Shown here: in pieces, positions 6,102-64,000 of the stretch | How the letters are laid out: each line of letters opens with the position of its first letter | How positions within the stretch are numbered: the first letter of the stretch is position 1 | Assembly: GCF_037042905.1 (NCBI RefSeq) | Contig: NC_087245.1 | Span: forward strand, 43,214,001-43,278,000 | Reading direction: 5' to 3' | Origin: Lytechinus pictus | Lineage: Eukaryota | Length of the DNA stretch: 64,000 nucleotides | Program-made: the position numbers and the translations under genes | Notes under the pieces: model-generated | Databases searched by the model: none | What the model was told of the DNA's origin: nothing | What the model saw: only the letters and a program-made list of their open reading frames with translations

Positions 6102-6565
6102 ATGATATACATACATGTACATCCTATGAACACCAAAGGAGCAAGAAAGGTAGCAGAAACGGCCGCCCTCCGTTTTCTGAAAGAACGCATCTTTCTCACT
6201 AGATGCACGATTGATTCGGCTAAGACGGAATACGAAACTTTAAAAGCCGATATCAAAGAGACTATGCAAGCCCAACATAGTACAGACATTCTGAAGGTTA
6301 ATGAAATTATCTACGCAGATGTTTTCGCTAAATGCAAGAAAAGGCAACAGGCTAAATTTGAAAAGTTGATACAACCCAAATCGAAGAAGGTCACCGCCTC
6401 ATTAGCGAATGAGGATAAATGGGTTGTTAATCTATCCTCGAGACAGATCACCTCCACCGAGGAGCAATTGCTTAAGAAAGGCCTCGCCTTTGCCGTGTCG
6501 CCCCCAAAATTGCCCATTACCGAGATTGTAGCTAAGGTTGAAACCGCGGTCAAGTATATTGATCC
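6102..6565 (+). mobile_element. Penelope-like retroelement fragment (region N-terminal to the RT)
   Basis: KWVVNLSSRQITSTEEQLLKKGLAFAVSP matches the VVNLS..L...E..L.KGL.F...P motif typical of Penelope-like ORFs (recognised from memory). The ORF is cut off at the repeat array. Confidence 0.6.
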
Positions 6566-6834
6566 AGTTTGAAAACGATGGTTATGAAATAATGGTTTTA
6601 ACCGTGGTTTTATGAATGTGTAAAAACTGTGGTTATAAAACCATGGTTAAACATTCGTCTTAGCAAGACTGAAAACGACGGTTATACACCATGATTTTAA
6701 CCTTGGTTTTATGATAGTTTTGAAAATGATGGTTATATAAGTTATAACCATGGTTTTAACCGTGGTTTAATGAAAGTGTAAAAACAGTGGTTACAAAACC
6801 ATGGTTAAATTTTCGTTTGAAAACGATGGTTATA
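6565..6834. repeat. CCATGG-rich repeat array, segment 1
   Basis: Recurrent GAAAACGATGGTTAT and AACCATGGTTTT units; continues after element B at 21682. Confidence 0.9.
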
Positions 6835-7228
6835 CACACAGAAAAATTAGGGTACATTTGGGGTACATTTCGAGACATTATCACCCACGCGATCATATTG
6901 TACCCTTGGGGTACTGGTTTTTAGCCAAGAACAGCGGATTCTTGCGAGGGGTATAATTTTGAACCTTTCTTGTGTTAAGATTAGTGTGGTTTCCAGACCC
7001 ATACATAAGCTTTATATTACATAAATATTAGATAATTCAATTCCCAATGTATGATTAACGCATTAAACATGAATATATATTATTTACTATGCGATTTAGC
7101 CCTAAGATAGTGTCATTCTTGGTAGAATATTTAATACTGTTCAAATTAAAATAAGAATCATCCTTAAATGGGTTTTAAAGATAAGACCATGCCGTCAACT
7201 TTGCCGCCAACTTTGAGCCGGCGTGCAA

Positions 7229-7280
7229 GACGCTCGTGCAAGCTGTGAACGGTGGACGCTCGTGCAAGCTGTGAACGGTG
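7229..7280. repeat. Perfect 26-bp tandem duplication in the presumed 5' leader of B
   Basis: GACGCTCGTGCAAGCTGTGAACGGTG x2, upstream of a GTGAGT donor at 7321. Confidence 0.9.
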
Positions 7281-7780
7281 GTGCAATTTCTCTGGAAATC
7301 ATTGTCAAATCCGTCTAAAAGTGAGTATTTTCAGCCGCTTAGCATCTATTCTCTATGTTATCATAATTTTGCCAGAATATTGATCTTTTACCTGCAAATT
7401 TTTCCAGTTATGAGTAGCGAAACTGCCACGAACGGACGCTGGTTAGAAATTCTGACCAGTCCCACTCCTTCATTTTCGTTGTGGTGCGACTAACGTGAAT
7501 CGAGACATAAAAATTACTAATTACCACTTTGACACTTATTTTTCAACTTCTTTAGTTAATTTCCTTCTGGCCAGAGCAGAGAAACTAAAAAATTGAGGAA
7601 TTTAACAATGAGAGTGTGCATTTAACGTGGAATCTAAATAAATATGCTACATTATAACTTACATAGCCATATGGCATATGTGTAACTGCAACTGTTAGTC
7701 ATTGGATGATACATTTTCATGATTTTATAATTTTCGTTCATCAGTTTGTTTATCATTTGACCAGAACGGTAATTATTGTC

Positions 7781-10690
7781 ATGTTTCCTCAACCTTTGCC
7801 ATTTCGATGCCCATTGTGTGGTATCCATTTACGGTCTCTGCAAAGACTGCTAAGTCATGTAGGCGCAGTTCATCAGCATGAGCCCAACCTTTATATCACA
7901 TGCAATATACAGGGTTGCGTACAAGGGTTTAGCAAATTCCATTCCTATCGATCACATATGTATAGAAAGCATCGATTATTCCTTGATCTTGAAGAGAACC
8001 CTAACCACTTAGCCCAGGAAAATGATGAACAGCATTCTGATGATGAACTTGAAAATTATGGTCACGTGCTTGATGATGTGCAACTGGGAGAAAGAGATCG
8101 TAGTTCAAACAGGGAAATGCTACAAAAGCATTTGGCAATGTTTGCTCTTAAAACTAGGGAGAAATATAATCTCCCTAGAGTAGTTGTACAAGATATCATG
8201 AGTAGTGTACGTTCTCTCGTGTCATTTGTAAATGAGTCCCATACAAGTACCACAGATCACGAAGGTCCTTATAATTTTCCTGCATGTCGAGAACCAGAAG
8301 ATGAACTCAATGATCTTACATGTGATACAATCTTTGAGTCGATTGGGTCCGATTTTCTTCTTGAGAAATATTGCAAGGCCAATTTAGGTTTGATAGAATC
8401 TCACGAAAAGATCTTAGGTGAAGAATTGGTAAATGGTCGGCCGGTCAAACATACAATGCAGTATGTTCCCATTTTTGAGGTGTTAAAACAATACCTTGGC
8501 CAGGAAGATGTATGGGCTAGTATGAATGCCAACTTCATGGAGGTTTCTGATCCTGATATATTAGCAGGATATAAAGCTGGGGCTCATTTCCAGAGTAGTG
8601 AATTTTACTCTGCCCATCCACATGCATTGAGGATTGTGTTGTACACTGACGAGTTCGAAATTGTCAACCCATTGGGGGCAAAACGTGGTCAGCAAAAGTT
8701 GCTTGCAGTGTACTACATGGTGGAAAATATTGAGGCTCAATATCGATCAACCTTGTCAAATATCCATCTTGCTCTCCTTGTTAGGAACAAAATCGCTCAA
8801 AAATATGGATATGAAGGGATACTTAAACCCCTCATCACTGACCTAAAGATTCTGGAAAAAGATGGCATCTTCATAAATGTGAATGGCACAACGCATCACC
8901 GCCTTGGTTCTGTCATTGCAATGTGTGGTGACAATCTCTCGGCTCATGCTGTTGGTGGGTTTTCCAGTTGTTTCAATTCTGGGCGTATTTGTAGGCACTG
9001 TATGGCATTGAAACCTGAGATCTGCACAAAATTTGAAGAAAGTCAGTTTGTTCTCCGAACCACAGAAGTACATGCATATCATTTAAATGCCATTAAAGCA
9101 GACAGTCACAATTGTTCTGTTTATGGTGTTTATCGTCCATGTGTTCTCGATGAATTGCGATATTTTGATGTTACAAAGTGTTTACCCCCTGATCCCATGC
9201 ATGATCTGCTTGAGGGAGTTGTCCATCATGTGATAAGAGTTGTCCTCAAAGAGTTATTAGCGCGTTTTCGCCCAGCGTCGTACGACGTAGAACGTAAGGG
9301 TCGTGTGCAAAAATCGCCAACTTCCATGGAAACAGAGGCCCGAGCGTTCTTGAGCTCAAATCACGGACGGTTCTTCCGCAATTTAGCGGGCGTCCGCATT
9401 AGAACGTAGGATTTGTCAACAGCCGTCAACAGCCAATCAGATCGCTTGTAGAGCGAGCAAGCTGAGCCGATCAAATCGAGCGCGCGCCGACAGCCAGTTC
9501 ATAGAGCGCGGGCGCGGGATTTTCCCTAGTAGTGGTGACGTCATGCAGTCTACGTACTTCCGGTCGATCCGGCCGCGTTCAGCGATTTGCGAAACTGCTT
9601 ACAAGCGAGAGTTGAGCGCGACGGACGCACGAACCAAGAGATCGTTCTACGTCGTAGATAGCGTCGTACGACGCTGGGCGAAAACGCGCTAGTGACACAA
9701 CGATGTTTGAATTTTTCCAGTAGTAAACTGCAGAAGAAAATGGAAGAATTTAAATATGGTAGTAATGATGCAATGAGCAAGCCCGTTGTAATTCAGGCCA
9801 AAAATGTGAAGCACAATGAGCCCAATATAGTTGGTTCTGCGTCACAGAAACTATGCTTGTTCAGGCTATTGCCTTTTTTGATAGGTGAATTTGTGCCTGA
9901 AGATGCAGATATATGGGAGCTTTATCTTTCTTGCAGAGAGATTGTGGATATTTGCCTCTCACCCATTGTAAAGAAATCATGGCTTCCATATCTGCAGCAA
10001 GAGGTAATCGATCTAAGTGAATTGTTTGCAAAATATTCACAAGATCAATATCCTTGCAAACTTCATTATTTGATCCATTACCACAGACATCTTTCAGACT
10101 TTGGACCTCTTAGAAACTTTTGGTGTATGAGATTTGAATCTAAGCACCAATATTTCAAGAATCTATCGTCTGTGGTCCGTAACTTTAGAGATGTTGCCTT
10201 AACCCTGACAACACGTCATCAGTCTCTCCAATGTTGGCAAATGAATGCAGGGTCATTTTTCCAGCAGCAAGAGAGTGCTCTTAGTAATTGCAGACAGATT
10301 TCAGTGCTTAAACTGCCTCGTGCTCTCCAAAGAGTTTTGACTGAAATGAGTCTTGTCCACGAAGGCAATTTGTGGAAGACAAATTCTGTGCAAGTAAATT
10401 CCATGACTTATCAAGATGATGATGTTATCATCATAGATATAAAGCATGAAGAAATTCCTGTCTTTGGGAAGGTTAAGCATATTTTACAATGTGACACACA
10501 TTGGTATATATGCATCAAGGAGTTTGATACGTGCAGATTTAACAGGCATCTTCATGCATATGAAATTGGTGTAACAGAAAGATGGAGTGTGATGAAGGCA
10601 GGACCAAGAAGGGATTTCCAGAGTCTTAGTCTTTATGAGATAGATGACAAGTGCATGGTATCGTTGAAACATAGACCTTTGTTGTTGTAA
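7781..10690 (+). CDS. EnSpm/CACTA transposase of B (825 aa when restored), interrupted by a 430-bp MITE
   Basis: Two C2H2 fingers, YTDEFEIVNPLG, GDNL, CRHC, PPDPMHDLLEGV and KLHYLIHY...FGPLRNFWCMRFESKH. 7781-9259 joined to 9692-10690 is in frame (KELL|VTQR). Confidence 0.92.
9260..9689. mobile_element. GC-rich MITE inserted in the B transposase
   Basis: 28-bp perfect TIR GCGCGTTTTCGCCCAGCGTCGTACGACG, with TA on both sides (9258-9259, 9690-9691). Superfamily uncertain. Confidence 0.92.
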
Positions 10691-11543
10691 GGAAAATTGA
10701 ATCTTGCCCTCTATTAACCTATTTTCAGCATTTCATGCAATTATTGCTATTTTTGTGGTGTGTTCAGAAAACAGTAGAGGTCCTGTGCTGTCCAGTTTCT
10801 TTTTAGGTTTCTAGTAGTTTTTTATTTCTCTCCTTCTTTATATACTTTTTCGTTTATCTCATACATGTGTCATTTGTCTCTGACAAAGGTTCTGCTAGGA
10901 CTGACTGCTCAGGCTCTTTTACTTCGTGTTTTTCCAATTAACATATATTGTATTTTGTGGTTCTATAATGGCTACAATTTAAATGCTCATCTCACCTAGC
11001 AAAGAAGATTTTTTTTTAATAGTCTAGATACTGAGTCTGAATAAGTATCTAACATATTTTCCAATGCGTTCAAGTAGTTTTGCTACTCTCTAAATGGTAA
11101 ATTAACAATTGAATGAATAAATTAATGTATATATAGAGAGAGATGTAGGTTGATTATACAGCCACTATCATGGCAATTTTGGGGTGAGAGTGCATCGACC
11201 CAGCTTGTCAGTTGGTCATCTCTAAGCCGGCTAAAAGGTATGTATAATCCTCTCTGAATGTCAGTGTGATACGATTTTGATGTTGATAGTGTGAAATTCA
11301 CAAATTTGTCATGAATAGTAGAGGTGTCGTGGTCTAGATGTGAATTCCTGGGACTTTCTGGCAAGAAATTTTACTACATCTGCCACTTTCACCCAGGTGC
11401 TATTGTTCATGGCTACTCTATATAATAAGTGCAGTACAACAAACAATAATACTTCTCAGATATTTTGCGCACTGTTTTGCTTCAACAATACACCCAATCA
11501 AGACAATCAATGACATATCGTGCATATTTCTTTCTTCCTTTAG

Positions 11544-14500
11544 TGTTGCAGTATCATGTTTCTTGTGGGACTTCAAAGAAGCAGGTTATCATTGAAGAAA
11601 ATGCCACAATTGATGACTTGAGGGTGAAGATTGCCTCCAAATTTAACATGAGGAGACCCGACAGCCTGCAGGTCTTCAATAAAGACTTTGGTGACTGGCT
11701 GGACCTGGAAGAAGAGGATGAACTTCCTCCAACAATGTCAAGGGTGAAGGTTTTGGATGACCCAAACGAGGACACAGAAGACAAAGCGAGTTCTGATATC
11801 CATGAAGACAGGGAGGTCCCATCAAGACAGTAGGTTATTTTTTGTCTGTTCTGTATGCATATTATGTTGACGTTATCCGCATATATTGTTCATCTTTTCC
11901 ATTTTAATGCGTGAGGCAAACGCCTGGAGTAGTAAATGTCATAGACTTACATTTTTCCTCATGTTTCTTTTAATCGGATTGTAATTTATTCACTCAATGA
12001 TTTATTTCTATTATTGTAAATCAATTAAGCATTTGGCTGATTTTTATATACACGAGATGTTGTTATTGCCATTAATATTATTAGTATTATTATCATTATA
12101 ATTGTTATCATCATCTTTTTGCGCAGGACTTCAGTCGCTTCCACATGTCCTCAGACGCTGACATCTGAAGGAGCAAGGAGCAGCTTTTTTGTAAATTTTA
12201 AAGTGCCTGAAATGCCCCACGATGTGCAAAAACTCTTAAATGACAACAACAAGGCTGTTCTGGAAAGGAAGTGGAGGAGAAAAATTGTGTCGCATCTGTA
12301 TGACAACATGGTTCAAGTGGCAGTGTAAGTTTGCGTTAAAATTTGTCTTTCTCCTCAGTGAGTTTTCATTATTAGGACATATATTGGCTCAATCAGCGCC
12401 CGAACCCTACAATAATCTATAATAAACCATATAAAGCTTATTATAACCCTACAATATTAAGTCTGTATTGAACAAAATACATATTGCTTGGTTTGTGTAC
12501 ATATTCAAACATTTGTATCATTATTATACATGTATACGGGCAATTCCGTAAACTGATCAACCTTTTGTACGTCCGACCTCACTTTTCTGCTATTTTACTT
12601 TGCTATTTCACTATTTGGGCCATCATCATGAAAGACCATTACACCGAGTTTGCAAATCAGATATGAATGATGGAAAGTTAATTTATGAAGGCCCTGTATG
12701 CAGGGGATCAGCTGTACATAATTTATAGATTTACCAATTTTTTTGTATTGCTTTGATGTACCCTCAAAAATTTAATCGAATCTTGTGCATGTACATTATT
12801 ATGTTTGGTTCCTCTCCTCTCTCCCTCTTTCTCTCTCTTTCTTTCTATCTGTGTGTGTGTTTCTGTCTTCTCTTCTTTCTTTCTCTCTCTCTCTCCCTCT
12901 CTCTCTCTTTAACTACAGGTACCCTCATTCATGGGAGTACAATGCTGTGTGCAGTGCACTGATTAACAAGCACCCGATTTTGAAGGATCGAACCATAAAT
13001 GGTTCGGGATATGTAAGTTTTACATGCGCGCATGTGTGTGAGAATAATGATAATGATTCTTGAGATGATAACATATAATAAGTAGTAAATTGTAGTGAAC
13101 AAATATGCAATATTGAAACATTTTTTGTTCTTTTTTTTTCCTTACACATCTTGTGTTTCCTTACACATCTTGTGTTTGCGAGTCTGATACCACTTCAAAA
13201 TGGAGGAAAAATACCATGAAAAAGATCGATTTTGCACAGATTTGACTGGAACTTGATTGTGTATTATGTGTCAGAATATATAACTTGTTAAATACCTTTT
13301 CAATAATTCCACTTCATTACGTTAAAGCCCAAGTATAGTTTTGGTAAGGATTAAGAAATGTGAATTTTTGGGATATCTACCATGACATATAGTTTTTATA
13401 CACATTTTAAGACCATAGCATTTTTTCTACGAGCTAATTCTTTTGGAAATTTGAATTTGACCGTTAAATCGTATTTAGCGCCCTCTATTGGTTGTAACAA
13501 TAATTTGCTTCTTATCGGGCATATACAAAGTTATTTCCAAGACTTGATTAAAGCATGATAAAAAGGAATACACAAAGAATAAATTCTGAAATTTTCATCC
13601 AATTCTATGCATGAGAAGTTGTCCTTTATCAAGAAAGAAAATATTGAATTCGCATCGGGGGACACGACGCTGAAATATTTTGCACATTTTAGGTTATAAC
13701 TTTTCCAAAACTTGTTCATTTTTTGCACAATCTTTTGTACAACATGTTCATGATATCATGTTTCATTTTATACCGATTTGAAGTCAAAATTTGGTGATAA
13801 AAAATTTTGCTTTTACCAAAACTGTACTTGGCCTTTAACCCTAAATAGGCTGGGCTATTTTGAGAGTTCTCAGAGCCGGGGGGGGGGGGGGGGGGGCCTC
13901 CCAGGCCCCCCCCCCCCCTTCTGTTCTCGGCCGTCGATCGCGCTATCGCCGCGAAAATTTGCACGCGAGTAGAGCATCATGTAAACTACAAATTACCATC
14001 GTCAGATTTTCGAAAAAATACACCGTTTATTTTTAATTAATTAATTATGCTAATTTATGCATAAAAAGGCATTTTGTTCTCTAAATCACAAAATACTAGT
14101 GATAGCAAACTAATTTTTGGTCTAAGTATTCCTGGTATCATATCTAACAATTCCACATAAAAAAAATTGCACTGACAAATTGAATTTCTTTTTTTTTTTT
14201 TTTTTCAATTTCTTATGTATTTCATTGTTTTTTCGACCTTTTTTTTCTATTGTTTTTTGGGCACAATTTATTACAAATATTTTTTCAAGTATAATTATGC
14301 TAAAATGAATTGATTTCTGCCACTGAAAGCAAAAACATGAATTATTATGTGAATTAATTGAAAAAACACAATTTGCATTGACTTTGTACACAAAAACACG
14401 TTTTGGAGCAGTTTTGAGGCTGACATGCGTGTATAAAATGTTACGTAATTTCGTAACGGTAAGTCCGATTATCATGAAAACGGTTTTAAAAGTTGCGGGA

Positions 14501-17500
14501 AACTTGAAAGAAAAAAGTCAGCGAGCCGCGTTATCAGAAATTTTCGTGCAGCGAAACGATCGCGAAATCCGTCGGCCCCCGGCCTAGTTAGGGTTAATGC
14601 AGGGTTAATTATTAAAATAACCAGGTTTTTTTTTTTAATATGCTGTTATGCTTCATGTCTCACATTATTTTTGCATTGTAGGATACAATAAAAGAGTCGC
14701 TGAGGACAAAGTTTAAACACGAGAGAGGGATTCGAACACCATCAACTGATGTAGCCAGGAGGAGGGAGTTGTATGGCCGCAATGGCCCCAGAAAGCGTGC
14801 TGAGGACAACGTGGAAAAGGCCCCATCTCCTGTTAAAAGGAAGAAGCGGGATAGCATTGAGGTAAAGCAACCGTATACTTTTTTAGAGTTATCTGTAGCA
14901 TCTATCTGGCATTTCAATGTTATGACTTATTGTGAAAGAAGCCATCTATTAGATTGTTGGTTGTAATACATGTGTCGATTTATATATAGAAACAAATGAA
15001 ATTTCAATCTTGTGTGCCGATGATTTTTCATGTATTCAAGAACTCATGTGACGTTTTGTTTAAAATTAATGTGCTCTTTTTTTTTTTGTTTAGACCTCAC
15101 ATGGGGGAGAAGACGAAGCCAGCATCCAAAGACACATCGCGTCATTAAAAGATCTGGCATCCAAGAGGGGCGCAGACCCGTCAATTATTCAGGACAAAAT
15201 GAAGCGGACGCGAAGTCATAGACTTTGTTTTATTCAAGCCAATGCTTTGCAGGATGTTCTGAATGAATATCCGATACTGAGGTTTGAAAAACAGGTTAGT
15301 ACTAAATGTATTTCTTTCTTTGATAACATTAAAACTACTACGTACACATCAATCTCTTCGCGCACCAAATCAGATCTTAACGCAACATTGATTATTATTT
15401 ACTATTAAAATTGTACATGTACAAAAAAATATTGAAACTGCAGAGTTATAAATATCGGCTCCTATTTTTCGGAATAAATGGATGAAAATGCAATAGATTA
15501 TAGATACTGCACATCTTCGACCAAGTTAACTACTTTATTCATGTGTGATGTTCGGTTTTCATTTAAGAAATATGGAGGATATTTTGATGAAACTTAATTA
15601 ATGAAAATTAATCAGCGCGGATTAATCAAATGAAATCCATGAATTTGATTGGATAAAAAGCATCGTCTCTTACTCTTTAATAAATATTAGTGTCGGAGAA
15701 TGAGGCTTGTATTGTTGCTGCAACAAGCCTCATGAAATGCCCTCCAGGCGCTAGTTATAAGTGCGCTATTGATTACCTTCTATGAACATTGGCTCATTTT
15801 GTTTAATTTGTGTCCATCCATTCTTTTTAGCTAATACGTGAGCTTCAAAATACGTATGGGGCAAAGGAAATAGCAGCCGCTATTGCCGAATCGGTTACAG
15901 CTAGTGGAGAAGTGATTCTCCGAGAAGGATTGAAGGTGCCAGCAGCACAAGAAGTGATCGAGCAATATCAGGACAAAGTTGATGGTGCGACTACAGACAA
16001 GCAGAAAAAAGGTATTTTGTGCCTCATACCTCCAATTTATTTTATGGTGTAGAGGATAGTACCAAAAGCTATGGAATTATTTGCGATATTTACATTTATT
16101 TCGGCTTACATATAAAAAGGAATTGGTACTGCTAAAGTCACTGTCGTCCATGCCTTCAAAATCAGTTAATTGCATGAGGAGGAACATAACTATCCCACAT
16201 TAGTTGTCATAGTCTTTGTTTATTATTCTTATCATAATTTATTATGGTGCTCAATTTCCCTGTCATCACCCTTTCAGAGAAGAGAAGAAAAAATGGACGT
16301 GTTTCCTTGACAATTAACATGGATATTTCGTTATCTTTCCTTCATGATTATGATCTAGAAGAAATAGCTTCCAAAAGCGTAAAACTGAAATACAATGTAT
16401 TTACATGTATCTATTTTGTTTGGTTTTGTTTTAGATTTACTGGTGGCATTGTCATGCTTGCTGTTTCCTTTGATATTTGGGGAAAAGGACTCCATGTACA
16501 CTATAAACAAGGTAACATTCAGATTCCGCATTTAGTATCTACTTTCCTTGGGATTGATTAAATTTTGCATTTGTCGGCTTTATCTAATTGTCATTCCAGG
16601 TCATTCCAGGCTATCATTTTTTTATGTTAACAATTCTAATTTAAGATAGACACCAATTGCAGGGACTGCAGAACCGGGGGCGGGGGGAGGGGGGGGGTGG
16701 GTGCTCGGGGCTGCAGCCACCACACTTTTTAAAAATTGCGTGCAAGCCTATGGCAATGTGTAAAAATCGTTATCCACAGGCCCCGCACTCTCAGCCCCCC
16801 CCCCACTCTTCAAAAACGTTCCATGGTGCCTGAAATGTACCATCAATAATACAGTTTAACCTCTTTATAAAGATCACTGATGCATGTATATTAAAGTAAT
16901 GTTTTTGGTCAGAGTTCTTTGCATTGATTTGTTTTCCCTCCAAGGGAATAATGAATATCGAGAATCTTTTTTAACCCTATTTTAACTGGGCTTTTTGAGA
17001 CCAAGTTTATACTTCAGATCTCGGCCGTGGATCGCGCAATCGCCGCAAAATTTTGCACACGGATAGAGCAAAGTGTAAACTACAAGACTGTATGGATTGA
17101 TTTTCCGAAAATTCCTAATTTCTATTTTTAAATAATTAATTATGCAAATTTATGCATGAAATCACACTTTCTGCTCTATTTCCCTCAATAAAGCACCTAT
17201 AAGGCTAATTTTTGGTGTGAATATTCTTTATAATATCCCTCATGACACAACTTGAAAAAAATTTGGTATGACAATTTATTTCTTATGTTTTTTATTGATT
17301 TATGAATTTCTTATGTATTTCTTTGTTTTTTAGACCTTGTGTTTTCTATTGTTTTTTCTATGAAATTTATTGCAGGACATTTTTGAAGCATTTTTGTGCT
17401 GAAATAAATTAGTTTCAGCCCATCAAACAAAAAATAACTACATCTTTATGGATTCTGACTGAAATCACAATTTACATTGACTTTGCACACAAAATCACGT

Positions 17501-18054
17501 TTTTGAGCCATTTTCGGTCTGACATGCATGTACAAAAAGTGGTGCGGCAACATAACCACATACCCGATTTTTGCGAAAACAGTCTTAAAAGTTGCGCAAG
17601 ACGTTAAAGAAAAAAGTCAGCGAGTCTCGTGGTGAAAAAATTTTGCGCGGCTGAGTGATCGCGAAATTTGTCGAGGGGGGGGGTCAAATTGACCCCCCCC
17701 CCCCCTCCCCAGTTGGAATAGGGTTAAAGATTTATATGTTTTTATATTTCCGATTGGCTTTCTCTTTCTCAATTTTGTCAGGAACCCCAGAGCCCTACTC
17801 CTACCCTAGTGATATCAGGGAACCCCTTTGAATGTCGTGATTTAGCCATATTCATGGACGGGATAGAAGTTTGTCGAGCATCAGATCTCACATCCGGGTT
17901 TGTTGCAACATTCTCAAGTTTTTATGTGTTTGGGGTCCAGTACCCACAACGTGGAAAGAGGACCCTACAGCTATACCAGAAATTTTTTGCAGGACTGGAT
18001 GATGGAAGTCCCCTACCACCCAGAGTCCAGCGATTTCTTAACAGCCTTGTTTAG
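11544..18054 (+). CDS. Spliced accessory gene of B: ubiquitin/PB1-like N-terminal module plus SAMD3-like body, about 496 aa, start exon unresolved
   Basis: Exons 11544-11829, 12127-12324, 12919-13012, 14682-14861, 15094-15294, 15831-16011, 16435-16511 and 17782-18054. All are GT-AG, phase compatible (2,2,0,0,0,1,0) and stop-free. Motifs include VPEMPHDV, YPHSWEYNAVCSALINKHPIL, EYPIL and FYVFGVQYP. Confidence 0.85.
12812..12910. repeat. (CT)n/(GT)n microsatellite before an acceptor site
   Basis: Read directly from the sequence. Confidence 0.9.
13326..13834. mobile_element. Kolobok-like non-autonomous element
   Basis: TTAA|AGCCCAAGTATAGTTTTGGTAA...TTACCAAAACTGTACTTGGCCT|TTAA: TTAA TSD and purine-purine terminus. 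Confidence 0.75.
13839..14593. mobile_element. piggyBac-like non-autonomous element
   Basis: TTAA|CCCTAAATAGGCTGGG...CCCGGCCTAGTTAGGG|TTAA. Confidence 0.85.
16975..17723. mobile_element. piggyBac-like non-autonomous element related to 13839-14593
   Basis: TTAA|CCCTATTTTAACTGGG...CCCAGTTGGAATAGGG|TTAA. Shares internal CTCGGCCGTnGATCGCGCnATCGCCGC and GAAAAAAGTCAGCGAG. Confidence 0.85.
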
Positions 18055-51892: not shown

Positions 51893-52387
51893 TAACTTTC
51901 GTTTTACCACAGTTGAAAAGTGGTTATTCACCATTATTTTAATAATGGTTTTAACCGTAGTTTTATGAGAGTGCATAAAAGATAGTAATAAAACCATGAT
52001 TTAACCATGGTTGTATGATAGCATAAGAACAGCGGTTAATGGTCCATGGTTACCCTTTCATTTTACCAAAGTTTAAAACGATGGTTTTTCATCATGACTT
52101 TAGCTATGGTTTTATAATAGTTTGAAAACGATGGTTATGAAACAGTGGTTTTATGATTTTGTAAAAACGATAGTTCTGAAAACGTGGTTGAAATCGCAGA
52201 TGTATGATAGCGCAAAAACCATGGTTATAAAACCACGGTTAAACTTCCCTCTTACCAAGATTGCAAAGGCATATACACCATTGTTTATGATAGATTGAAA
52301 ACGATGGTTAGGAAAAATGGTTTGACCCTGGTTTTGTATGCTATCATGCAACGGTTAAAACCATGGTTTTTATACACTATCATACAG
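51893..52387. repeat. CCATGG-rich repeat array, segment 3
   Basis: Same units as segments 1 and 2; the last ~60 bp appear inverted. Confidence 0.88.
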
Positions 52388-52389
52388 CA

Positions 52390-52975
52390 ATCATTAAAAC
52401 GTATCCAGAACACGGCTGCTCGGCTTGTAACTCGTTCCAGAAAGCACGACAACATCACCCCTATCCTCCGTTCTCTTCACTGGCTTCCTGTCTCTGCACG
52501 TATCATCTTCAAAATCTTGATTCTAACTTACAAAACCCAACATGGTCAAGCCCCTTCTTATATTACCGACCTTCTCTCACCCAGGATCCCGACAACCTCC
52601 ATTCGACTCCGATCTTCCACACATCTTCATCTGCACCTGGCCCAAGGACCCAGCGCTCGGACAAGGTATGGGAACCGAGCATTTAGTGTTGTTGCTCCAA
52701 AGCTTTGGAATGACCTTCCCATAGAATTGAGGGATGCCCCGTCATTCGAATCATTCAAAGCTTCTCTCAAAACTTACCTTTACAATTCTTCCTTTAAGTT
52801 TTAAGTAAATTTTGTCAATATCAAACGATTATTCCTAATTTATTTCTTGTTTGTTTATGTGTGTTATACTGTTCAATGTTATTGATGTATGCTACTTAAT
52901 CGTTTTGTAAAGCGCTTAGAAACACCACATGTATTAAGCGCTATATAAATACAATGTATTATTATTATTATTATT
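52390..52975 (+). mobile_element. 5'-truncated non-LTR retrotransposon, L2/CR1 group (ORF2 C-terminus, 3' UTR, (TTA)n tail)
   Basis: LKRIQNTAARLV...HDNITPILRSLHWLPVSARIIFKIL...GNRAFSVVAPKLWNDLP...FKASLKTYL; tail AAGCGCTATATAAAT...(TTA)n. Confidence 0.88.
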
Positions 52976-53429
52976 TGGCTTTATATCTGGATAATAGTAC
53001 AATAACACTTAGTCATAACCAATATACATGTAGACATGGCTGTGTAATACTTATGGAAAACATACCATGCAAGTCTATCATTATGCCAGAATGTTCAGAT
53101 GTACATGTATAGTGAAGAATTATTCACTGACGTCGATATACTACGTACTGATGCTATGGTGTTGTAGTATGATATGGTTACACAAAGCCGAGTTATGAAC
53201 CAATCAATGAATTAATAATTTTTTTTCTGTACAGGGAGCTGATAAATTTACATTGTTCACGTCATCTTGTCCATGATGGTGCATGGCCAACGAGGCTTGC
53301 TGATAAGCTTACTCACTGACCCCTGAAATTAATTTGAATATTTAAATTCTTAAATGAGAACGACTGAAATTTAAATGGCATTTAATGGACATTTGATGTA
53401 CATTCTTGTTCTCTCTCACTTTTTTTTCC

Positions 53430-53492
53430 CAATGCGCTTAGAAACTGTTGTATTAAGCGCTATATAAATGTTAATTATTATTATTATTATTT
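53430..53492 (+). mobile_element. Short L2-type LINE/SINE 3' end
   Basis: GCGCTTAGAAAC...GTATTAAGCGCTATATAAAT...(TTA)n, the same tail as 52910-52975. Confidence 0.7.
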
Positions 53493-54779
53493 ATATGTAT
53501 TATGAATATCAATGCTCAACTCTCAACACAGTTTCAGAAATTCCTTTCAGTATTAGAAGTTTATCTACACTGTAAAAAATTGCTGTAATTTGTACGGTAA
53601 ATTGATGTAAATTTTAACAGTAAGATACTGTAATGATGATTTTACAGTAATTTGCCGTATTATTCAGGCGGTTCACGGTAATTTACAGCAATCATTCGAA
53701 TTCTTTTTTGGGGAGATCAACTTTACAGTAATTTACTGTAATTGAGCACGCGAAATGCATTCTGGGATACAACACGTCACACGCGCATGCGCCTCTTACT
53801 CGGCGCGGAGCATGAATTCTTGCAAAATTTCGAGTGTCAGATCGACAAGAAGTGCCGTCGGAACTGCTGTTGTTTTGAATTCAACTTTACGTCTCCGGTC
53901 AAGTACACATTCCCTGGTAAGTAGTGATATTTTCATCCTGTAGATCCGTCACATGTAGAAATGTTTTGTTGAACTGTTTTACATATAATGTAATCTTTCA
54001 TGGAACTCTGACATTCACCATCCTCACTTTTCGCGCGCTCTCTCTGTTGTCTATGAAGATGTATGTGTTAATGTGTGTTGTGCGGATGTTGTCTACGGAA
54101 GATGTGTACTGTGTAGATTTAGACTTAGAGTTGTGCGGGGTGTTGACTCAAATTTCGACTGTTTTTAACTTGCTAAAAAATAGTAAAGACCTATGCATAG
54201 AAATTTGGTATGTGTTGAAATTATCATTAAAATGCCTCTTAGCAATTCCATCATATCGACTAAATTCCATTACGCTACTTTTTGCTAGATCAGCTAGATA
54301 GATTGCATCGGATTCCGATGTCTGCACGCAGTTTAGCCATGCAACCCTGGCCATACTCGTACAGTACATGTACAGTACAGTCGTGCAGCGCAGCATGCAG
54401 TGCTAGTGCTGTGTGGTGCGAGCTATAGCTAGCTAGCCGCGTCAGCGCATGCATGCAGCGCTAGCGATATGGCAAGGAGTTCCGGCCGATCGACCGTGGG
54501 CAATCGTCTGTTACAGTCTGGTCTTTTGTATTGTGACGTCATTACTGTTTGAAAGCGTGCGCGTGCATATAATTAGCCAAGGATGGGGAAGGGGGATACT
54601 CCCATGAATTCATATGTGTCTTTTTCACAATGTAACACATATATATTTCCTTTGCTATTGCAGTTTTTACACTTTGATAATGGTAAACTTTTCTTGAAAA
54701 TATAGACTTATCCATTTGTAAATATTTTTAAAGTTGATCACAAATAACACACAAACAAATTTTTTTTCCAACTCTATAT

Positions 54780-55280
54780 TTCTACTTCTCGGTTCTCCAC
54801 TTTTTTGTTTTGTCCTTTTCTTCCCGCTGCTTCTAATTATTCACCTCCTTTGTCTTCTTTCTTCACCAATTTCTTCTCCTTTGCCTTCCTTCTTGCCACC
54901 TCCCCTTTCCTTTTTTTTTCATTTCCTCTTTTAATATTCTAATTAATTCTTATCTCTTCTTTTGGCTTCTACTTCTCATATCTCTTCCATCTTGTCAAAC
55001 TCTTTCTCATTTTGCTTCTTACTCATTCCATGTCTATCTTCTTGTCCCCTATCTCCCTCCCCTCCTGCCCAGGACCCTACTCATTCAACTTATTATTTTT
55101 TCTATTTTTTCCCTCTCTCTCTTCCTCCAGTACTTCTCCACCCTCTTCGTCTTGAGTATAATCACTTCCTCTTTCTCCTCCCCCCTATTATCTCATTCTT
55201 CTTGTCGTCAACCTAATTCTCCTTTTTTTATCCTTTCTCTTCATTTTTACCTTTCTCTATCTTGTCCTCTTCCACCAGCC
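54780..55280. repeat. Pyrimidine-rich low-complexity tract
   Basis: C/T-rich on the + strand; the ORFs over it are compositional artefacts. Confidence 0.8.
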
Positions 55281-57879
55281 TCATATTGTGGTTCTGTCTT
55301 ATTATACCCCACTATGGTAGCAGTGCATTTATGCTAGGCCTTTGCCTTAAGGTGCCTTGAGGCCAATTTTTTCAATTCCTATGGCCTTGAACTTTCATGC
55401 CTTGGCCTTGAGGATTTGAAGCCTTGAAAACTTAAGGCACTTTCATGGCTTTGTGAGATTTTTACCATTTCTGAATGTCAATATTAATCAGCACTGAAGA
55501 AATCCGCTGAAATATCTTGCTTTGGATAGGTAGCCTGGAGGCACAAAGTTAACCATAATTAATTTTTCTGTGATTTTTTCTTTTCATAATCATGTAAGTT
55601 TTTTCATTCCCTTTCATGCATTTTATGTTCTTTAAGTCAAGTAATAATTCAATATAGTTTGAGTGACTATAATGCGGACACTGAGGACTTTTAGAAATAT
55701 GAGTTGTTTAAAAGCATTATGCATGATAGACTCGTACCAAGACTATATGAAGAGGTGGTCATAATTCTGCCAAACGGTCATGTCATTGGGTGGTTTCTGG
55801 GTGAGTCCATAAACAGGACTTGGACTGCAAATTAAAGTGCTTCTTAGAAAAGCAAACTTTAAAAGTCTTTGCTGGTGTGCAGGGTGGGAGGTTGTTCTAC
55901 TTCCTCGACCCCCCCCCCTTTGGGTACGGGCATGCATTACAGTTCCTGTTTTCATGTCCTGATAAAAAAATAGAGTCTTCTTGATCAAAACACACATTTG
56001 CTCAATTGCATTTTTAGTCATCTTTTAGTCATCGCTGTCTAAATTTCACATTATTTTCATGAAAGAGTACATGAGTCATAGTACCAGAGTGTTGCAAAGG
56101 CTGCAACTACCAAAGTGTTGGGTCTTTTTTAACCGAAAATCATGGCTGTTTTTTTTTTTTCGTGCTCCTTTTCCTTGCTGCATAGCATTGTGTCTTTTTC
56201 AAGGGGAGGGTGTTATATTTGATGCACATTGCACCTTGTTTCTATAACTTTGTGCATATTATGAGTCCTCAAATATATTCGTTGACTACAGCCTTGGGTG
56301 GTTAATCCTTAGCTTTGGCCTTGGATTTGTCTACAGTCCACACCACTTAACCCGCCAAACATAATGTACAGTACATGTACAGGTAGCTTGTAGGGGGAAT
56401 ATACATGTAGGAATCAGCGTGATGTTGGTTGGTCAAGCCGTCTGTTGCAAAATATGGCCTTGCAAACTCCTCCTCCAGTTTTGAAGCAATTTGAATGAAA
56501 CTTAGGGTAAATTATAAAATTGAGGTAAAGATGTTGAAAACTTGCTTTTTGTGTTTTCGGGCTATGCATTGCCATGGTAATCACAATTTTACCAAAACCC
56601 TTGCAAAGCAGATTACTTCCACAGTATTTAAGCAATTCATTTCAAATTCGGTATGTGTGATGATCTAAAGGTGTAGTTATGCAAGACAATCTTTGTCTGT
56701 GTACGGACAAAGCATTGCCATGGTAACCACATGTGAAAATCTTGTGAAGTGAATAACTTCCACATGCAAGTTTGAAGCAATTGAAATTTAATTGGGTAGG
56801 CTATTATGGCATTCATGTAAAGAAGGGGAAAACATTTTTTTTGGGGGGGAGGGGGGTATCAGACAATGCTTTGTCATGGCAACTACAATTTTACCAAAAT
56901 ATTGCAGATCATGTAACTTTCACAGCTTTTGAGCAATTTGGGTCATGTTCAGTATTATTGTGCAGATCGAGGCTCTACAGGTAAACTTGTGCAAAATCTC
57001 CATTGTGTTTGATATGCCCAAAGCATTTTCATTATACCAAAGAGAGCACCATTTTTAAGAGGGTGAAACATTCTTTCTCGAGCACATGTATACTACATGT
57101 GCTCAGAAAGAATATTATGCCTTAGAAAGAAATTTATAACCCAAACATTTTTTGAGGAGTTCATCGATGTTCCACATCTGAAGTTAATTTGTAATTAAAT
57201 TTATGGCAGATGTCGATAGGTCTTATTTTCAAATAGATATCAGGCAGTGTTAAATTCCTTTCGACAAAATGAAGGGGACCTAAAGGTACGCACATATAAT
57301 AAGTGTATGCCTATTTTGATTTTGAAGCTGACTGGTTTGAATCTTACTCCAATTTCTAAGTAAATGTATTACCAAGTTTAAAGCAAAATTAATGATTCTT
57401 TTGCGCTTCCCTTGAAGAAATTCCCATTGCTTGGTCACATCGGATGGTGCATTGAAGGTATTGCATTGTGCATATTTTCTGATTAGCTGCTTAGCTTTAG
57501 GACCCTGGCCATAAAATAATGTCTTCGGCACCCTTCAGGGCAGATTCATATATGAGTGTTTTTTCATTTCTTAATTATTGGTTCACCAAGAAAAAAATAA
57601 AATTATGTATAGTCTTAAAACAATTATATTTCAGTTAGCTTCCTGTTTTCAGTTAGCTTACTGTAATCACTTTTTCAAACTAAGGCTGGTAAATCCTAAG
57701 ACGAGTAGAAATCTAATCTACTGAAGATGTACAATGTAATTTCATGCATATTTCTCCAGTGAATTGAACTAATCTTTTTTTTCTCTCTCTCCTTTTTTCT
57801 TTCCTGCAGTTTCTCATGGACGATTTATGCAGTGTCCCAACTGACAAATGCAGACGGATTATGTGCAATTCATTCATCT

Positions 57880-60560
57880 ATGTACATTTGTAAGCTGTGC
57901 ACTTATTCAACGGATTCGTTAAAGCAGTTTTCAGATCACTTTAAAGTACATAGGAACGTAGCAAATTTTGACTTTCCTTGTGGAGTCCCAGGCTGCTGTC
58001 GCACATTCAGGCATTATTCATCTTTCAAAGCCCATGTATATAGAGACCATCAACATCTTTCCAGGAAGCACGCAGTTCAGCATGTACATATTACCTTGTA
58101 TTGTCCACTTTGTGCTGTGAAGTTTACAGAAATCTCTGACGTTCTTTCTCATCTTAAAGGCCATATTTCTAGTGGAGTTGCGGTACCATGCCCTTTTGCA
58201 CATTGCCAAAAACAGTTTTCTGTGAAATCTTCTTTTTCGTCACATATTTCGAGACAACATAGTAAGCGCCAAGTTGAGTTTTTGTCAGAATCGGTTTTGC
58301 GAGAAAAATATAAAGCTCTTACTGAATCAAACCCTGCTGAGGAGGATGATCAAGAATTTCCAGATGAAGAAATCTTGCATTGCACTGATGATGTAAAGGT
58401 AGATGATACTGAAGAGGATGTATTTGTAACTAATGATGTATTCAAAGAAAACTTAGCACTATTTTACTTGAAATTGGAAGCCAAATTCTTGTTACCTAGT
58501 TCTACAATTCAAGAAATTGTTAATTCATTTCAAGAAATACATTCTCTGAGTAACAGCAATTTGCTGCAGGAATTAAGACAGAGACTGAAGGCATTAGATA
58601 TTCCTGAGCATGAGCTCACTGATCTGCTGACTGTATTTACAACGGAAGATTTGCTGAATCCTACCAACTGTAGCTATTTCAGATCAGATTGCACAAGGAC
58701 ATCATACTTCAAATCGAAGTTTAACTATGTTCATCCTCTGGAAATTTACTTGGGCGTGGACCAATGTGGTCGGCAACGGTATTGCCAGTATGTTCCAATA
58801 CGAGAAACCCTGTTAGCCTTGTTCAAACAAAACTCTTTCATTCAGAATTACAACAAAACTCATCGTGATCATCCTGTAAGAAAGACAGTTCTAGAAGATG
58901 TTTATGATGGTCAGACTTTCTTAAAAGGTGATAGTAGTAAGGATGACACAGCGGTCACACTCATTCTGTATCAAGATTCTTTTGAAGTGGTAAATCCTCT
59001 AGGCTCGGGGAGAAAAAAGCACAAGATGTTAGCTGTCTATGCAACACTTGCTGATATACAGCCCCACAATAGATCAAATATTGATCATATGCAATTGGTG
59101 TTGCTCTGCAGAGAACAAGACTATAAGGAATTCGGAGCGAGTGCTGTCTTTGGTCGTCTTGTTGTGATCTTCAGCTGCTAGAAGATAATGGTATTGTACT
59201 AGATGACAACACATGCGTCAAAGGTACACTTCTCGCTATTGCAGGAGACAACCTTGGGTCACATAACTTAGGAGGATTTACTGAGAACTTTAGCACAAGT
59301 CACTTCTTTTGCCGCTATTGCGTTCTTCCAAGGAACTCCTTTATAGTGGATCCGGTTACAACAGGTGGTATCAGAACAAAGGAACAATACCAACAAGCTG
59401 TACAAGCTACAGATACTGAAGAAAGTGAAAGATGCGGTGTCAAGTTTGATTCCATTTTCAATAAACTGTCAACCTTTCACGTCTGCAAACCTGGATTGCC
59501 ACCATGTTTAGGTCATGATTTATTTGAAGGAATCGTCTCTGTTGACTTGTCATTGTTCCTCAGTGATCTCATACGAGTGAAGAAGTATTTCACTTATGCA
59601 CAGTTGAACAGGTTAATAACTCGATTCACTTATCTTAGTAGTGACATCAACAACAAACCCTGTACAGTCAATGAGAGTGGAAAAAAACTTGGAGGACATG
59701 CAGTCCAGAACTGGTGCTTGTTAAGACTGCTTCCCCTAATAGTTGGCAACAGAATAAAGAATCCCGTAGATGATGAGGTATGGCAGCTTTGTTTGACACT
59801 TAGGGAAATAGTTGAACTAATTTGTGCGCCAACAATATCAACAAATCAGATAGCACATCTGAAGATACTTATTGAAGGCTATCTCAGTGATGTATGCGAC
59901 AAATTTCCAAGTTACTCTCTTAGACCAAAGCATCACTTCATCCTCCATTATCCTTGGCTAATTACACAGTTTGGACCTTTGATACGACTGTGGACATTAA
60001 GATTTGAGAGTAAACATACCTTCTTTAAGCAATGCTGTGGGAAACTTAAGAATTTCAAGAACTTGTGCAAGACGCTAGCACACAAACATCAACTGTTGCA
60101 GGCCTACTTGGGTGCATGTTTTTTGTTTCCCCCTACCTTGATAGTAGAGAAGAGCTTGCCTTTCACGCCAAATGTGTATTGTGAGAAGATAAAGACTTGT
60201 ATTTCAAAGTGTAGTTTCTATGGCCAGCATGTTGAAGTTGCACACAAAGTAATATTTAAGGGCACAATCTACAAGAAAGGTTTGTTTGTTGTTCTCGATC
60301 GACATGGAGACAATCTTAGTTTGGGACGAATTGAATTTGCATTGATTCACTCGGATTTGCCGTACTTTGTGACACAGGTGTACAACGCAGCATTTCTTAT
60401 AGACATTGGAGTGTATTGTCTTGAGGATAATGACGATGACCAAGAATTCAGATGTGTTGGTGTAGACAAGCTGCTTGATTTCTACCCATTGCCAGTGTAC
60501 AAAGTTTTTGGATGCTCCCTCATACCTTTACATCATGCTGTTGTAGACGACGGATCGTAA
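57880..60560 (+). CDS. EnSpm/CACTA transposase of E (893 aa when restored), one frameshift at about 59165
   Basis: Four C2H2 fingers and LYQDSFEVVNPLGSGRKKHKM. After the shift: DLQLLEDNG...AGDNLGSH, CRYC, PPCLGHDLFEG, PKHHFILHY and WTLRFESKH. Confidence 0.92.
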
Positions 60561-60687
60561 AGTAACAGGTCTTTGTAGCAAACTCTTGTGTCAGGATTTG
60601 GCATTGACCTATGTAGTACAGTTTACATGTACATAATATTTGACAGGTAGCAAATGTACATATTGGTGCTCATCAGGTACATATATT

Positions 60688-63600
60688 ATGATGGAAGAAA
60701 TCAAGGAGGTTATTCAGTCTGTGCTTCCGACAATAGTAGAGCTGCAGTTGGACACTCTTGTTGAGAGACTACTCGCTAAGGGAGTAGAGGAGAAGGATGA
60801 TCTCCAATTTGTGGAGGAAGAGGACATTACAGATCTTGTCAAGCCAATCCAGTGTCGCAAGCTTCTTAATGCCTGGAAACTTGGTATGTGAGTTCCAACC
60901 ATACATGTACAATGACAAAAATAATAATTCTAATCATAACAATAATGAAGATAATTGTGATAATTATAATGGTAACGAATGATGAAAATAATCATCAACC
61001 TCATTGTTGATAAGGAAAAAAATATTTTTGAGTTCCGTTGTTTTCAAAATATTTTTGAGTACCCTGAAAATCAGAAAGCTGTAATAATCAAAAGTAAAGG
61101 CTCCTAGCATCTTGTTAATTAACTTTGCATTTTAAGTATTGTTTGCATATAAAGCTACATGTACATGTACATTAACCTTGCAAGGTTTAGTAATTGACCT
61201 AAAGCTTTTTTGTGGGGTAAAGTTTAGATTTATATTGATAAAATACCTCCCTGCTTAATGTTGACCCTTGTAAGTTCTAAAATTATACCACAGAACCATT
61301 ATCTTATTTAATTTATAATAATTTTGTGTTGGGAAATGAATATTTTGCATTTGGAATAATAAACAAGTGGAATGCCTCTGGCCGTCTCACCTGCATCACG
61401 CGATTCAATATAGCAGCAGTGCTGATTTTGAAAACTACTATAACTCGCACAAGATGTTCAGTGATACTTGGTTACTCTTATTTCCACGTTTTATGAACTA
61501 GACCAATACACTTTCAAATTTATGGCTGTAATTCAACAAATACCCCAATTTGGCCAAAGTTCTTTGACCTTACATGACCTTTGACCTTGATCATGTGACC
61601 TGTAACTCGCACAGGATGTCCAGTGATACTTGATTACTATTATGTCCAAGTTTTATGAACTAGACCAACACACTTTCAAATGTATGGCTGTAATTCAACA
61701 AATACCCCAATTTGGCCAAAGTTCATTGACCCTAAATGACCTTTGACCTTGATCATGTGACCTGAAACTTGCACAGGATGTTCAGTAATACTTGATTACT
61801 ATTATGTCCAAGTTTCATGAATCAGATCCATAAACTTTCAAAGTTATGATGGTAATTCAACAGATACCCCCAATTCGGCCAAAGTTCATTGACCCTAAAT
61901 GACCTTTGACCTTGGTCATGTGACGTGAAACTCAGGCAGGATGTTCAGTGATACTTGATTAACCTTATGTATAAGTTTCATGAACTAGGTCCATATATTT
62001 TCTAAGTTATGATGACATTTCAAAAACTTAACCTTAGGTTAAGATTTTGATGTTGATTCCCCCAACATGGTCTAAGTTCATTGACCCTAAATGACCTTTG
62101 ACCTTGGTCATGTGACATGAAACTCAGGCAGGATGTTCAATAATACTTGATTAACCTTATGGCCAAGTTTCATGAACTAGGTCCATATACTTTCTAAGTT
62201 ATGCTGTCATTTCAAAAACTTAACCTCAGGTTAAGATTTGGTGTTGACGCCGCCGCCGCCGCCGCCGTCGGAAAAGCGGCGCCTATAGTCTCACTCTGCT
62301 ATGCAGGTGAGACAAAAACCCAGATGTTTTGGAATATTTAGCAAATTCAGACTTTCTTTTCAGGAGTTACATGTATGAATTTTTAAAGTTTTTGCAAATA
62401 ATTTTGGGATCATTGAGCAACTTTGCTCATATCTTTGAAGGAATTATTAATAGTTTGTTCAGATTTTCACTGTTTCTTTTTACCACATCCCTCTAAGACA
62501 TGTTTGCATGTTTGAGGCTGAGTCATACCAAAATAAAGAGCTGGAAGAATTTTACTTTGAAAAATTTAAAAACATGTAATTCTCCCTACAAAATCAAGAG
62601 AGAGTCCATCTCCACACTTTCATTGCAGATTATGGAGTGTAGCTTACATGTAGCTGATCTGCATAATATGATTATGGCTTTGATTGAACTTTTACTCTTT
62701 GACTTACTTTCTTGTATCTAATATCCACTATAAGCACACAGAAGCCTTTTTTCCTTAGGATAACCTAACAATATATCCACTGTTTTAATCATAAGTGGAC
62801 ATGTAATAAGATATAGATTATGTATAAATACAATTGACACAATTCTTTCTTTTTTTCCCATATTATAACATTTTACATGCACATGTAGGTATGGTTACTT
62901 GTACATACTAAGTCGTAAATGTTTCTTTATCTATATTTTTCAGTGACAACTCCTGAAATCGTTCATGACACTGCAGAGACAGTTGGTGTGGCATCAAAAC
63001 CTACATGTATCCAGGATCCAAGGGAGGAAAAGCAGAAAATGACATCACCTAGTCATGGGAAACCAACATCAAACTGGCCTGAAAAAATGGATATCAAAGG
63101 ACTAGAAATTCCAAAGAACGTTTCAAGTAAATTGGAGGGTGGTGTGCGTCTCGGACATTCTGAAAGATGCTCTGCTGTCAGGGTAATCGTGGCAAAGATG
63201 CAAAACTATGAAAAAAACCCAATACGACAACAGTGCGATGTAGTAGCTAGAAGAGTGGTGAAGCAATGGCCAGGCAGTTTCTGTGATATGAATGATGATG
63301 ATAGCAAACTTGGATCCGGTCATTTTTCATTGTTGACCAAAATCAAGTGGAGAGTAGAACATGTTAATAGAAACAATACATTAAATCGCCATCGTGCCAG
63401 TAGAAAGCAAAAGGAAGCAACAAATAAATTGTTGAAAACGACAGACACATATGGCTGTATTAACTGGCAGCCTGTGCTGCCTGCAGGTGAAAGTGTTGAA
63501 TCCCTCATGGAAAAAAGAGAAACATTGAAAAGCATATTTTCAGAAAAAGGACCAGAATCACCACCAGCAATTGTTGACTCTTTAATGACTATTACATACT

Positions 63601-63941
63601 ACCTACAAAGAAAGGTAATTAATGGACCCCCGCAGCTGGTTAGTCAAATCAAAGAACAATGGCCCTACCTCTTTGTTCCGAATTTGTTCACCAAGCATTT
63701 CACAACTCTAACTGGTGTTGACATTGCCTCTACCCTTCTGAAGGCATTCCAAGAGAAAGGACAAACAATTCTTCGTTTCCTAGTGCAGGAAAAATGGGAA
63801 GATGCGAACCATGCCCGTCCTCTCGTGGAAGCTGCGGCTGCAAAAGATGATGCAAACCTGCATGATGTAGCATCTGGTGTGCTGAGAGGGTTGCAGAGCC
63901 TGTTTAAAGAAGGGAATGACTCCCTTTTCCTCATCCATGAT
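60688..63941 (+). CDS. Accessory gene of E (partial): SAM-like exon plus a long SAMD3-like exon
   Basis: Exon 60688-60883 (LVERLLAKGVEEKDDLQFVEEEDITDLVKPIQCRKLLNAW, phase 1) joins exon 62944-63941 (998 nt, open: VARRVVKQWPGSF...GSGHFSLLTKIKWRVEHVNR...YGCINWQP...TYYLQRKVIN...QWPYLF). The ORF track lacks it because the frame has no stop before the window end. Confidence 0.85.
61362..62318 (-). mobile_element. Helentron-associated-like (HINE/Tsp-type) element in an intron of E
   Basis: Subterminal inverted repeat GTCTCACCTGCAT / ATGCAGGTGAGAC, (GCC)n microsatellite, about five 165-190 bp tandem units with TGACCTTTGACCTT, A/T-run ends. Confidence 0.75.
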
Positions 63942-64000
63942 GTAAGATTTAATAATTACTCTCCTGAAAAATGTTTTGCGCTATTAATCCTGAGTGAAAA

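Follow-up and report, generated by a model that had tools for sequence, protein, structure and literature searches.

A 64,000-nucleotide stretch of the Lytechinus pictus genome (the window; C1:43214001-43278000, + strand of a 44.3-Mb contig, approximately 1 Mb from the contig end) is the core of a domain of approximately 290 kb that contains at least 10 independent, anciently diverged lineages of giant CACTA/EnSpm-type DNA transposons, all of which lie on the + strand. The insertions in this domain are ordinary cut-and-paste events at TA, situated beside or inside one another and in a small satellite. What is new is the arrangement of these elements along the chromosome, not the elements themselves. 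Our preferred explanation, which we hold tentatively and with less than even confidence, is that the shared direction reflects strand-selective retention in a uni-strand trap resembling the Drosophila flamenco locus.

A domain of co-oriented transposases

Five elements, designated A to E, are recognised in the window. Three sources set their limits: the end sequences as read directly, other copies in the genome, and a scan for terminal inverted repeats (TIRs). Window coordinates are used throughout, with negative values and values above 64000 denoting flanking DNA.

2137-3593, + strand: element A, a truncated transposase fragment found by blastp and tblastn comparison with the D, B and E transposases
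6835-21681 (14,847 base pairs [bp]), + strand: element B; TIR CACACAGAAAAATTAGGGTACA, 21/22 positions matched; TA at 6833-34 and 21682-83
7706-10690, + strand: B transposase, interrupted by a 440-bp miniature inverted-repeat transposable element (MITE) at 9253-9696
22282-51892, putatively + strand: element C, non-autonomous; TIR CTCTCTTAATTTGCGCGATTAC, 18/22; TA at 22280-81 and 51893-94
24614-47669 (23,056 bp), + strand: element D, nested in C; TIR CACTCTTAAAATAACCTCTTCA, 20/22; TA at 24612-13 and 47670-71
within 32665-32793, + strand: SAM exon of D, just upstream of the transposase
32849-35364, + strand: D transposase, frameshifted near 33700-33830 (its frame of 856 amino acids [aa] is intact in other copies)
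53568-75430 (past the window end), + strand: element E; ends CACTGTAAAAA...TTTTTACAGTG; TA on both sides
57832-60560, + strand: E transposase, with a single frameshift near 59130-59180

The transposases of A, B, D and E are homologous and all on the + strand (blastp/tblastn), with pairwise identities of 25-47%, which confirms the strong divergence between families that had been claimed from the window alone. That original prediction also placed all of the genes on the + strand; this is correct for these four transposases and does not extend to C, which lacks a transposase and retains only a relic first exon. It further put the chance of five insertions sharing an orientation at 1 in 16. With four orientations defined by a transposase, the within-window figure is 1 in 8.

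The predicted co-orientation is borne out, and it is stronger outside the window than within it. A search of 264 kb (the window plus 100 kb on each side) with these four transposases as queries returned seven transposase loci, each of them on the + strand and no two more than 48% identical. Genome-wide searches used three queries, the core of D, the core of E and the N-terminal part of D (first-look candidates scored 63/63, 57/57 and 41/41, respectively); across 812 Mb, the resulting census counts about 51 loci that encode transposases of this clade. Two domains stand out in this census. On C1, ten of ten loci are on the + strand within 286 kb (C1:43.015-43.301 Mb); on a second contig, C31, six of six are on the + strand within 182 kb (C31:0.209-0.392 Mb).

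Neighbouring loci no more than 100 kb apart are co-oriented in all 15 pairs, a result matched by 1 of 200,000 strand shuffles. When the three pairs that prompted the finding are set aside, 12/12 pairs remain co-oriented (1 in 4,096). The six C1-domain loci other than the four in the window are all on the + strand (1 in 64), and the co-orientation of the six C31 loci corresponds to 1 in 32. Adjacent pairs 200-500 kb apart are co-oriented in three of five cases, and pairs more than 500 kb apart comprise six of the same and four of opposite orientation.

The two domains are also strongly enriched. The number of loci expected in 286 kb is 0.02, for which the Poisson probability of ten or more is about 1e-24, and approximately 31% of the transposase loci of the clade are found within the 0.06% of the genome that the two domains occupy. 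Transposase-bearing copies of D show a large excess there (3/9), which implicates the domains themselves rather than individual resident elements. Seven of the ten C1-domain loci are broken or truncated, and four of the six C31 transposases are intact. Most lineages of the clade are present at one to four copies, many of them with intact frames of 820-966 aa, so that low-copy families of this clade, which may still be active, are widely diverse in the genome.

A segmental duplication or a haplotig artefact was considered as a source of this pattern and rejected: the lineages are at most 48% identical, the 264 kb contain no N, and the order of families differs between the two domains. No DNA-level copies of A and B were found on C31.

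Family assignment and insertion sites

On sequence grounds (termini, 2-bp duplications, subterminal repeats and a large transposase), the elements are assigned to the CACTA/Mirage/Chapaev (CMC) group. The termini are of the CAC(T/A) type with matching inverted right ends in B (CACACAG), D (CACTCTT) and E (CACTGTA). C is the exception: its family ends in CTCTC, unlike the CAC(T/A) termini of CACTA/EnSpm elements. A 2-bp TA duplication flanks B, C, D and E on both sides, as the original prediction had it for every visible terminus. A has no visible ends, and a copy of C on C5 is flanked by TG/TG, which shows that the flanking 2 bp are a duplication located outside the element.

The likeness to known CACTA/EnSpm elements includes CAC(T/A)-type TIRs with subterminal repeat arrays, a large, putatively DDE-type transposase, some homologues of which carry the Pfam domain Transposase_21, a second, spliced gene on the same strand, and the occurrence of autonomous alongside deleted non-autonomous copies. 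Plant En/Spm elements generate a 3-bp duplication, whereas that observed here is 2 bp (TA), which is closer to the Mirage branch. Support from Pfam is indirect. A Pfam scan of the B transposase returned only Plavaka (E = 0.0018, below the curated cut-off), and scans of the D and E transposases and of an intact 860-aa relative returned no match. A precomputed PF02992 assignment is present on three among the 120 homologues listed, and the nearest Atlas clusters carry PF02992, PF18759 and PF06869.

In four lineages (A, D and two flanking elements), the DNA immediately before the transposase start codes for the second half of a SAM domain; the half-exons are positioned as follows:

2137-2238: element A
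32665-32793: element D
about -50061 to -49939: flanking element
+86387 to +86488: flanking element

This position suggests that the choice, by splicing, of either a SAM-containing product or the transposase is conserved. The half-exon shows that the domain is present, not that it guides insertion. In a tblastx comparison among the accessory regions of B, C, D and E, only shared repeats were matched.

B and C are inserted in a single array of a CCATGG-type satellite with 51-bp units, 600 bp apart, as had been described; the array is approximately 1.35 kb in length and is split by the two elements into three blocks:

approximately 6567-6832: satellite block 1, 51-bp CCATGG-type units, starting where a 449-bp repeat (6122-6570) stops
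21684-22279: satellite block 2, the 600-bp spacer separating B and C
51895 to approximately 52390: satellite block 3, followed by the tail listed next
about 52400-52804, + strand: C-terminal tail of a long interspersed nuclear element (LINE) reverse transcriptase, 3' of satellite block 3

The start of E lies 1,675 bp after the end of C, in agreement with the predicted 1.7 kb. The nesting of D in C likewise stands; its placement in "intron 1" of C is unverifiable in an element that has no transposase and only a relic first exon. The region into which these insertions took place was short, and by our own estimate, made without a formal test, it is therefore unremarkable that two elements hit the array and that one insertion is nested.

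One of two explanations offered with the original prediction was that the elements target one another, possibly through SAM-SAM contacts. The distribution of copies lends this no support. B and C landed in satellite DNA, D is not found next to C-family copies elsewhere, and no second transposase locus lies within 390 kb of six of the nine transposase-bearing D copies or of the three other copies of the B family. As TA is the target site of the clade, its presence at the termini is not evidence for mutual attraction between elements.

Origin of the shared orientation

One account of such a cluster is an ordinary graveyard in a gene-poor, low-recombination distal region, where harmless insertions and the products of local hopping pile up and a common orientation is coincidental. 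The domain is located approximately 1 Mb from the chromosome end and is packed with other repeats (satellite, MITEs and LINEs), the majority of the C1 copies are broken, unplaced repeat-rich contigs (C22, C28, C29, C31 and C38) carry copies too, and two copies of D lie 155 kb apart, as expected from local hopping; the double hit in the 1.35-kb array and the nested hit are, as estimated above, unsurprising at such short distances. Accumulation accounts for density, however, and not for direction. Co-orientation extends to all 15 close pairs, the 12 left once the prompting pairs are removed are sufficient to give 1 in 4,096, and the polarity occurs in two separate domains. The lineages are too diverged (at most 48% identical) to be local duplicates, and 31% of loci in 0.06% of the genome would be an extreme concentration for any graveyard. 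We consider coincidence in a graveyard to be improbable. CACTA nests and subtelomeric or heterochromatic accumulations in plants resemble the C1 domain in having elements within elements, a distal density of one superfamily and many dead copies; to our knowledge, these are not reported as uniformly oriented across unrelated families, whereas every neighbouring pair is co-oriented here.

In the flamenco-like uni-strand trap that we tentatively favour, co-orientation would arise from selective retention of one strand and not from insertion chemistry. The C1 domain would be read as one long minus-strand transcript, silencing small RNAs would come only from insertions antisense to that transcript, and such insertions would tend to be kept. 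A single antisense landing in the trap would hold each invading lineage to a handful of copies, and the trap would account for the concentration of one class here as well as for the low copy number (one to a few) of most families; the C31 domain would be a second locus of the same kind. The broken or truncated state of seven of the ten C1 loci is as expected of a graveyard or of a trap. That C1:43.02-43.30 Mb and C31:0.2-0.4 Mb are both uni-strand source loci for PIWI-interacting RNA (piRNA), devoted to giant CACTA/EnSpm elements, is a possibility that we regard as doubtful.

The closest known counterparts are the flam-like clusters of Drosophila, which span 227-1,085 kb, carry strand bias only in their Gypsy elements and were found de novo from sequence by the enrichment of one class together with a polarity signature (PMC10643416). 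The C1 domain shares with flamenco and these clusters a length of hundreds of kb, one class enriched in one orientation, other classes that are unpolarised, and many families that are each represented by one or few, often broken, copies (PMC10643416). It differs in that the polarised class is a DNA transposon clade, whereas in flamenco it consists of Gypsy-type retroviruses, and in its location near a chromosome end, such locations having been excluded from the screen for flam-like clusters (PMC10643416). The hosts also differ (an echinoderm here, Drosophila for flamenco), and the locus described here is a candidate recognised by its sequence signature. A literature search found no published piRNA-cluster map for any sea urchin and no report of a one-class, one-strand trap outside arthropods or aimed at DNA transposons. 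Uni-strand clusters are the textbook genome memory of parasites, but their good characterisation is limited to Drosophila and to retrovirus-like elements. The same signature for a cut-and-paste clade in a sea urchin makes the generality of the trap model directly testable.

Polarity is not general to all transposon classes in the region. Non-EnSpm sequences on the + strand comprise a LINE at 76.5-81.5 kb, three reverse transcriptase fragments and a zf-RVT open reading frame (ORF); those on the minus strand are an intact LINE at 68.2-72.4 kb and an intact integrase at -75 kb, presumably young copies. With LINE and integrase genes on both strands, a strand bias of all classes across the region finds no support in this small non-EnSpm sample. 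GC/AT skew was also rejected as a sign of transcription direction, as the weak GC skew (+0.024 overall) is inseparable from the elements' own composition.

Several points weigh against retention in a trap. The sample of non-EnSpm sequences is tiny (five on the + strand versus two on the minus strand), the position approximately 1 Mb from the chromosome end is one where transposons may accumulate for unrelated reasons, and no promoter or precursor of the domain was identified. The two domains hold three young D insertions, each of which already has the orientation of its domain; together with the four of six intact C31 transposases, these insertions are explained at least as easily by a bias acting at the time of insertion. 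RNA reads were counted over 51500-57499 in three paired, ribosomal RNA-depleted L. pictus runs of unspecified tissue (approximately 6% of each run), which gave 22, 3 and 7 reads. In the best run, most first mates are on the minus strand at 53.5-57.1 kb, corresponding to sense RNA of E if the library is dUTP-stranded, and a few reads run in the opposite direction near the 5' end of E; no reads cross the end of C or the satellite. Of the uni-strand trap transcribed from the minus strand that was the second explanation offered with the original prediction, the sequence signature is present (a domain of approximately 290 kb in which one class is polarised and others are mixed), and no clear minus-strand precursor was seen over these 6 kb in the three runs. 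These RNA reads neither show nor exclude a minus-strand precursor.

The young copies bring in the alternative that orientation is fixed at insertion, either by a strand-asymmetric local feature of this distal segment (the direction of the replication fork or of transcription) that biases target capture by the EnSpm transposition complex, or by polar protein assemblies (SAM polymers) through which resident elements recruit incoming ones. In its favour, the polarity is specific to one transposase clade, nearby intact LINE and integrase copies being in the opposite direction, and it extends to young copies, as the two D copies of the C1 domain and that of C31 have 96-99% identity to dispersed copies; most of the C31 transposases (4/6) are intact. 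The presence of three of nine transposase-bearing D copies in 0.06% of the genome suggests preferential landing; the three of five co-oriented adjacent pairs at 200-500 kb and the SAM half-exon preceding the transposase in four lineages are also compatible with this alternative. The TA target is symmetric, however, and the count of young copies is small (3/3). A version in which elements are drawn to their kin is opposed by the landing of B and C in satellite, by the location of other D copies outside C, by the solitary state of most D and B copies, and by a subterminal motif that differs family by family. We know of no oriented insertion by eukaryotic DDE cut-and-paste elements, and a literature search found nothing relevant. 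Orientation at insertion appears unlikely; if polarity did arise in this way, it would be a property of eukaryotic DDE transposition that is so far unreported.

A very long minus-strand host transcription unit (a giant intron or a long non-coding RNA) could also give a single direction, as sense insertions with polyadenylation signals would be purged and no piRNA would be involved. Gene-carrying transposons in animal introns have a well-established antisense bias, and the elements described here carry spliced genes with strong donor sites. Long ORFs (at least 120 aa) over the 264 kb are on the + strand by two to one (65 versus 32), an excess that is largely due to the EnSpm genes. A Pfam scan of 61 further ORFs of at least 115 aa in the same 264 kb returned no match and thus no recognisable host coding sequence, and there is almost no minus-strand RNA over the 6 kb covered by the three runs. 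LINEs, usually the most antisense-biased class, occur here on both strands, and a unit of this kind would be required twice, once for each of two separate domains of roughly 180-290 kb. We give this explanation little credence, and some probability falls to none of the four explanations considered.

Individual elements and neighbouring repeats

Element A comprises its SAM half-exon at 2137-2238 (tblastn) and overlapping ORFs at 2311-3135 and 3078-3593. No termini of A are visible in the window DNA, in which different repeats are found from approximately 3564 on. As no second copy was found in the genome, A is a single-copy fragment.

The B transposase ORF is interrupted by the MITE at 9253-9696, which has 35-bp TIRs and at least 35 copies at 94-100% identity on many chromosomes, indicating that this MITE family is young and abundant. 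The subterminal repeats of B are of the GGGGTACA type and are located at 6850-6880 and 21120-21670. The right part of B has a 100%-identical copy at C6:6983040-6988677, and intact 862-aa relatives are present on C2, C3 and C6. An ORF in the accessory region of B (11465-11833, + strand) weakly matches the N-terminal (ubiquitin-like) domain of Crinkler effectors (E = 0.0019, below the cut-off).

The ends of C read CTCTCTTAATT...AATTTAGAGAG. They are of the CTCTC type, start with CTCTCTT and differ at one position from the CACTCTTAA of D. C is made up as follows:

22282-23176, 23771-24611, 47672-47854, 48464-50596 and 50599-51892: DNA of C itself
about 23172-23775: a MITE of approximately 600 bp
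24614-47669: element D
47855-48463: an insert of approximately 610 bp

The pieces of C are contiguous in other copies; D, the 600-bp MITE and the 610-bp piece are therefore insertions into C. The window copy of C yielded no transposase, and neither did a longer copy on C9 that was examined by tblastn and ORF listing; the idea that C is autonomous and holds D in its first intron was rejected for this reason. Other copies of C have approximately 5.3 kb at 50597-50599 (L001:4534-9871) that the window copy lacks. In this DNA, no ORF of at least 70 aa encodes a product that could be recognised, coding similarity to the window elements is absent, and other repeats are included; no autonomous partner of C was identified among the copies compared. 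The strand call for C is based only on the relic first exon (22588-22650), which has a splice donor; this exon is conserved in one other copy and has a stop codon in another.

The subterminal repeats of D are of the GAATAG(A)AAAC type and are located at 24660-24900 and 47400-47650. At least 10 copies of D (96-99% identity) are found on other chromosomes; one copy sits 105 kb upstream, in the orientation of the window copy. An annotated Lytechinus pictus protein is the best homologue of the D transposase (100% identity).

The left end of E reads TA followed by CACTGTAAAAAATTGCTG (TA, then CACTG), and the right end reads TTTTTACAGTG followed by TA (CAGTG, then TA) at 75430. Its subterminal repeats, of the TTTACAGTAA type, are located at 53570-53740 and 75060-75430. 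E is the sole member of its family in the genome, the next relative being 44% identical. The apparently intact minus-strand LINE is nested within E at 68204-72420 and encodes a 996-aa ORF (endonuclease and reverse transcriptase) and a 283-aa ORF1. DNA contigs from another run break at 53566, by the left end of E. Although E is single-copy and its transposase frameshifted, it is weakly transcribed in one of the three runs; this RNA appears to be sense and to originate at the 5' end of E.

A genome search placed arrays of this satellite, several kb long and approximately 80% identical to the window array, at 40 or more loci on the majority of chromosomes; the starts of matches are often 300 or 450 bp apart. 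The satellite has a strongly positive GC skew (+0.24). The CCATGG array was considered as a set of EnSpm subterminal repeats and rejected, as it belongs to this dispersed satellite and has no linkage to transposase loci. The 449-bp repeat beside satellite block 1 (6122-6570) contains an open frame and has at least 10 copies at 99% identity, all with identical start and end positions; two of these copies, on C10, are 3.2 kb apart and resemble the direct repeats of a larger element.

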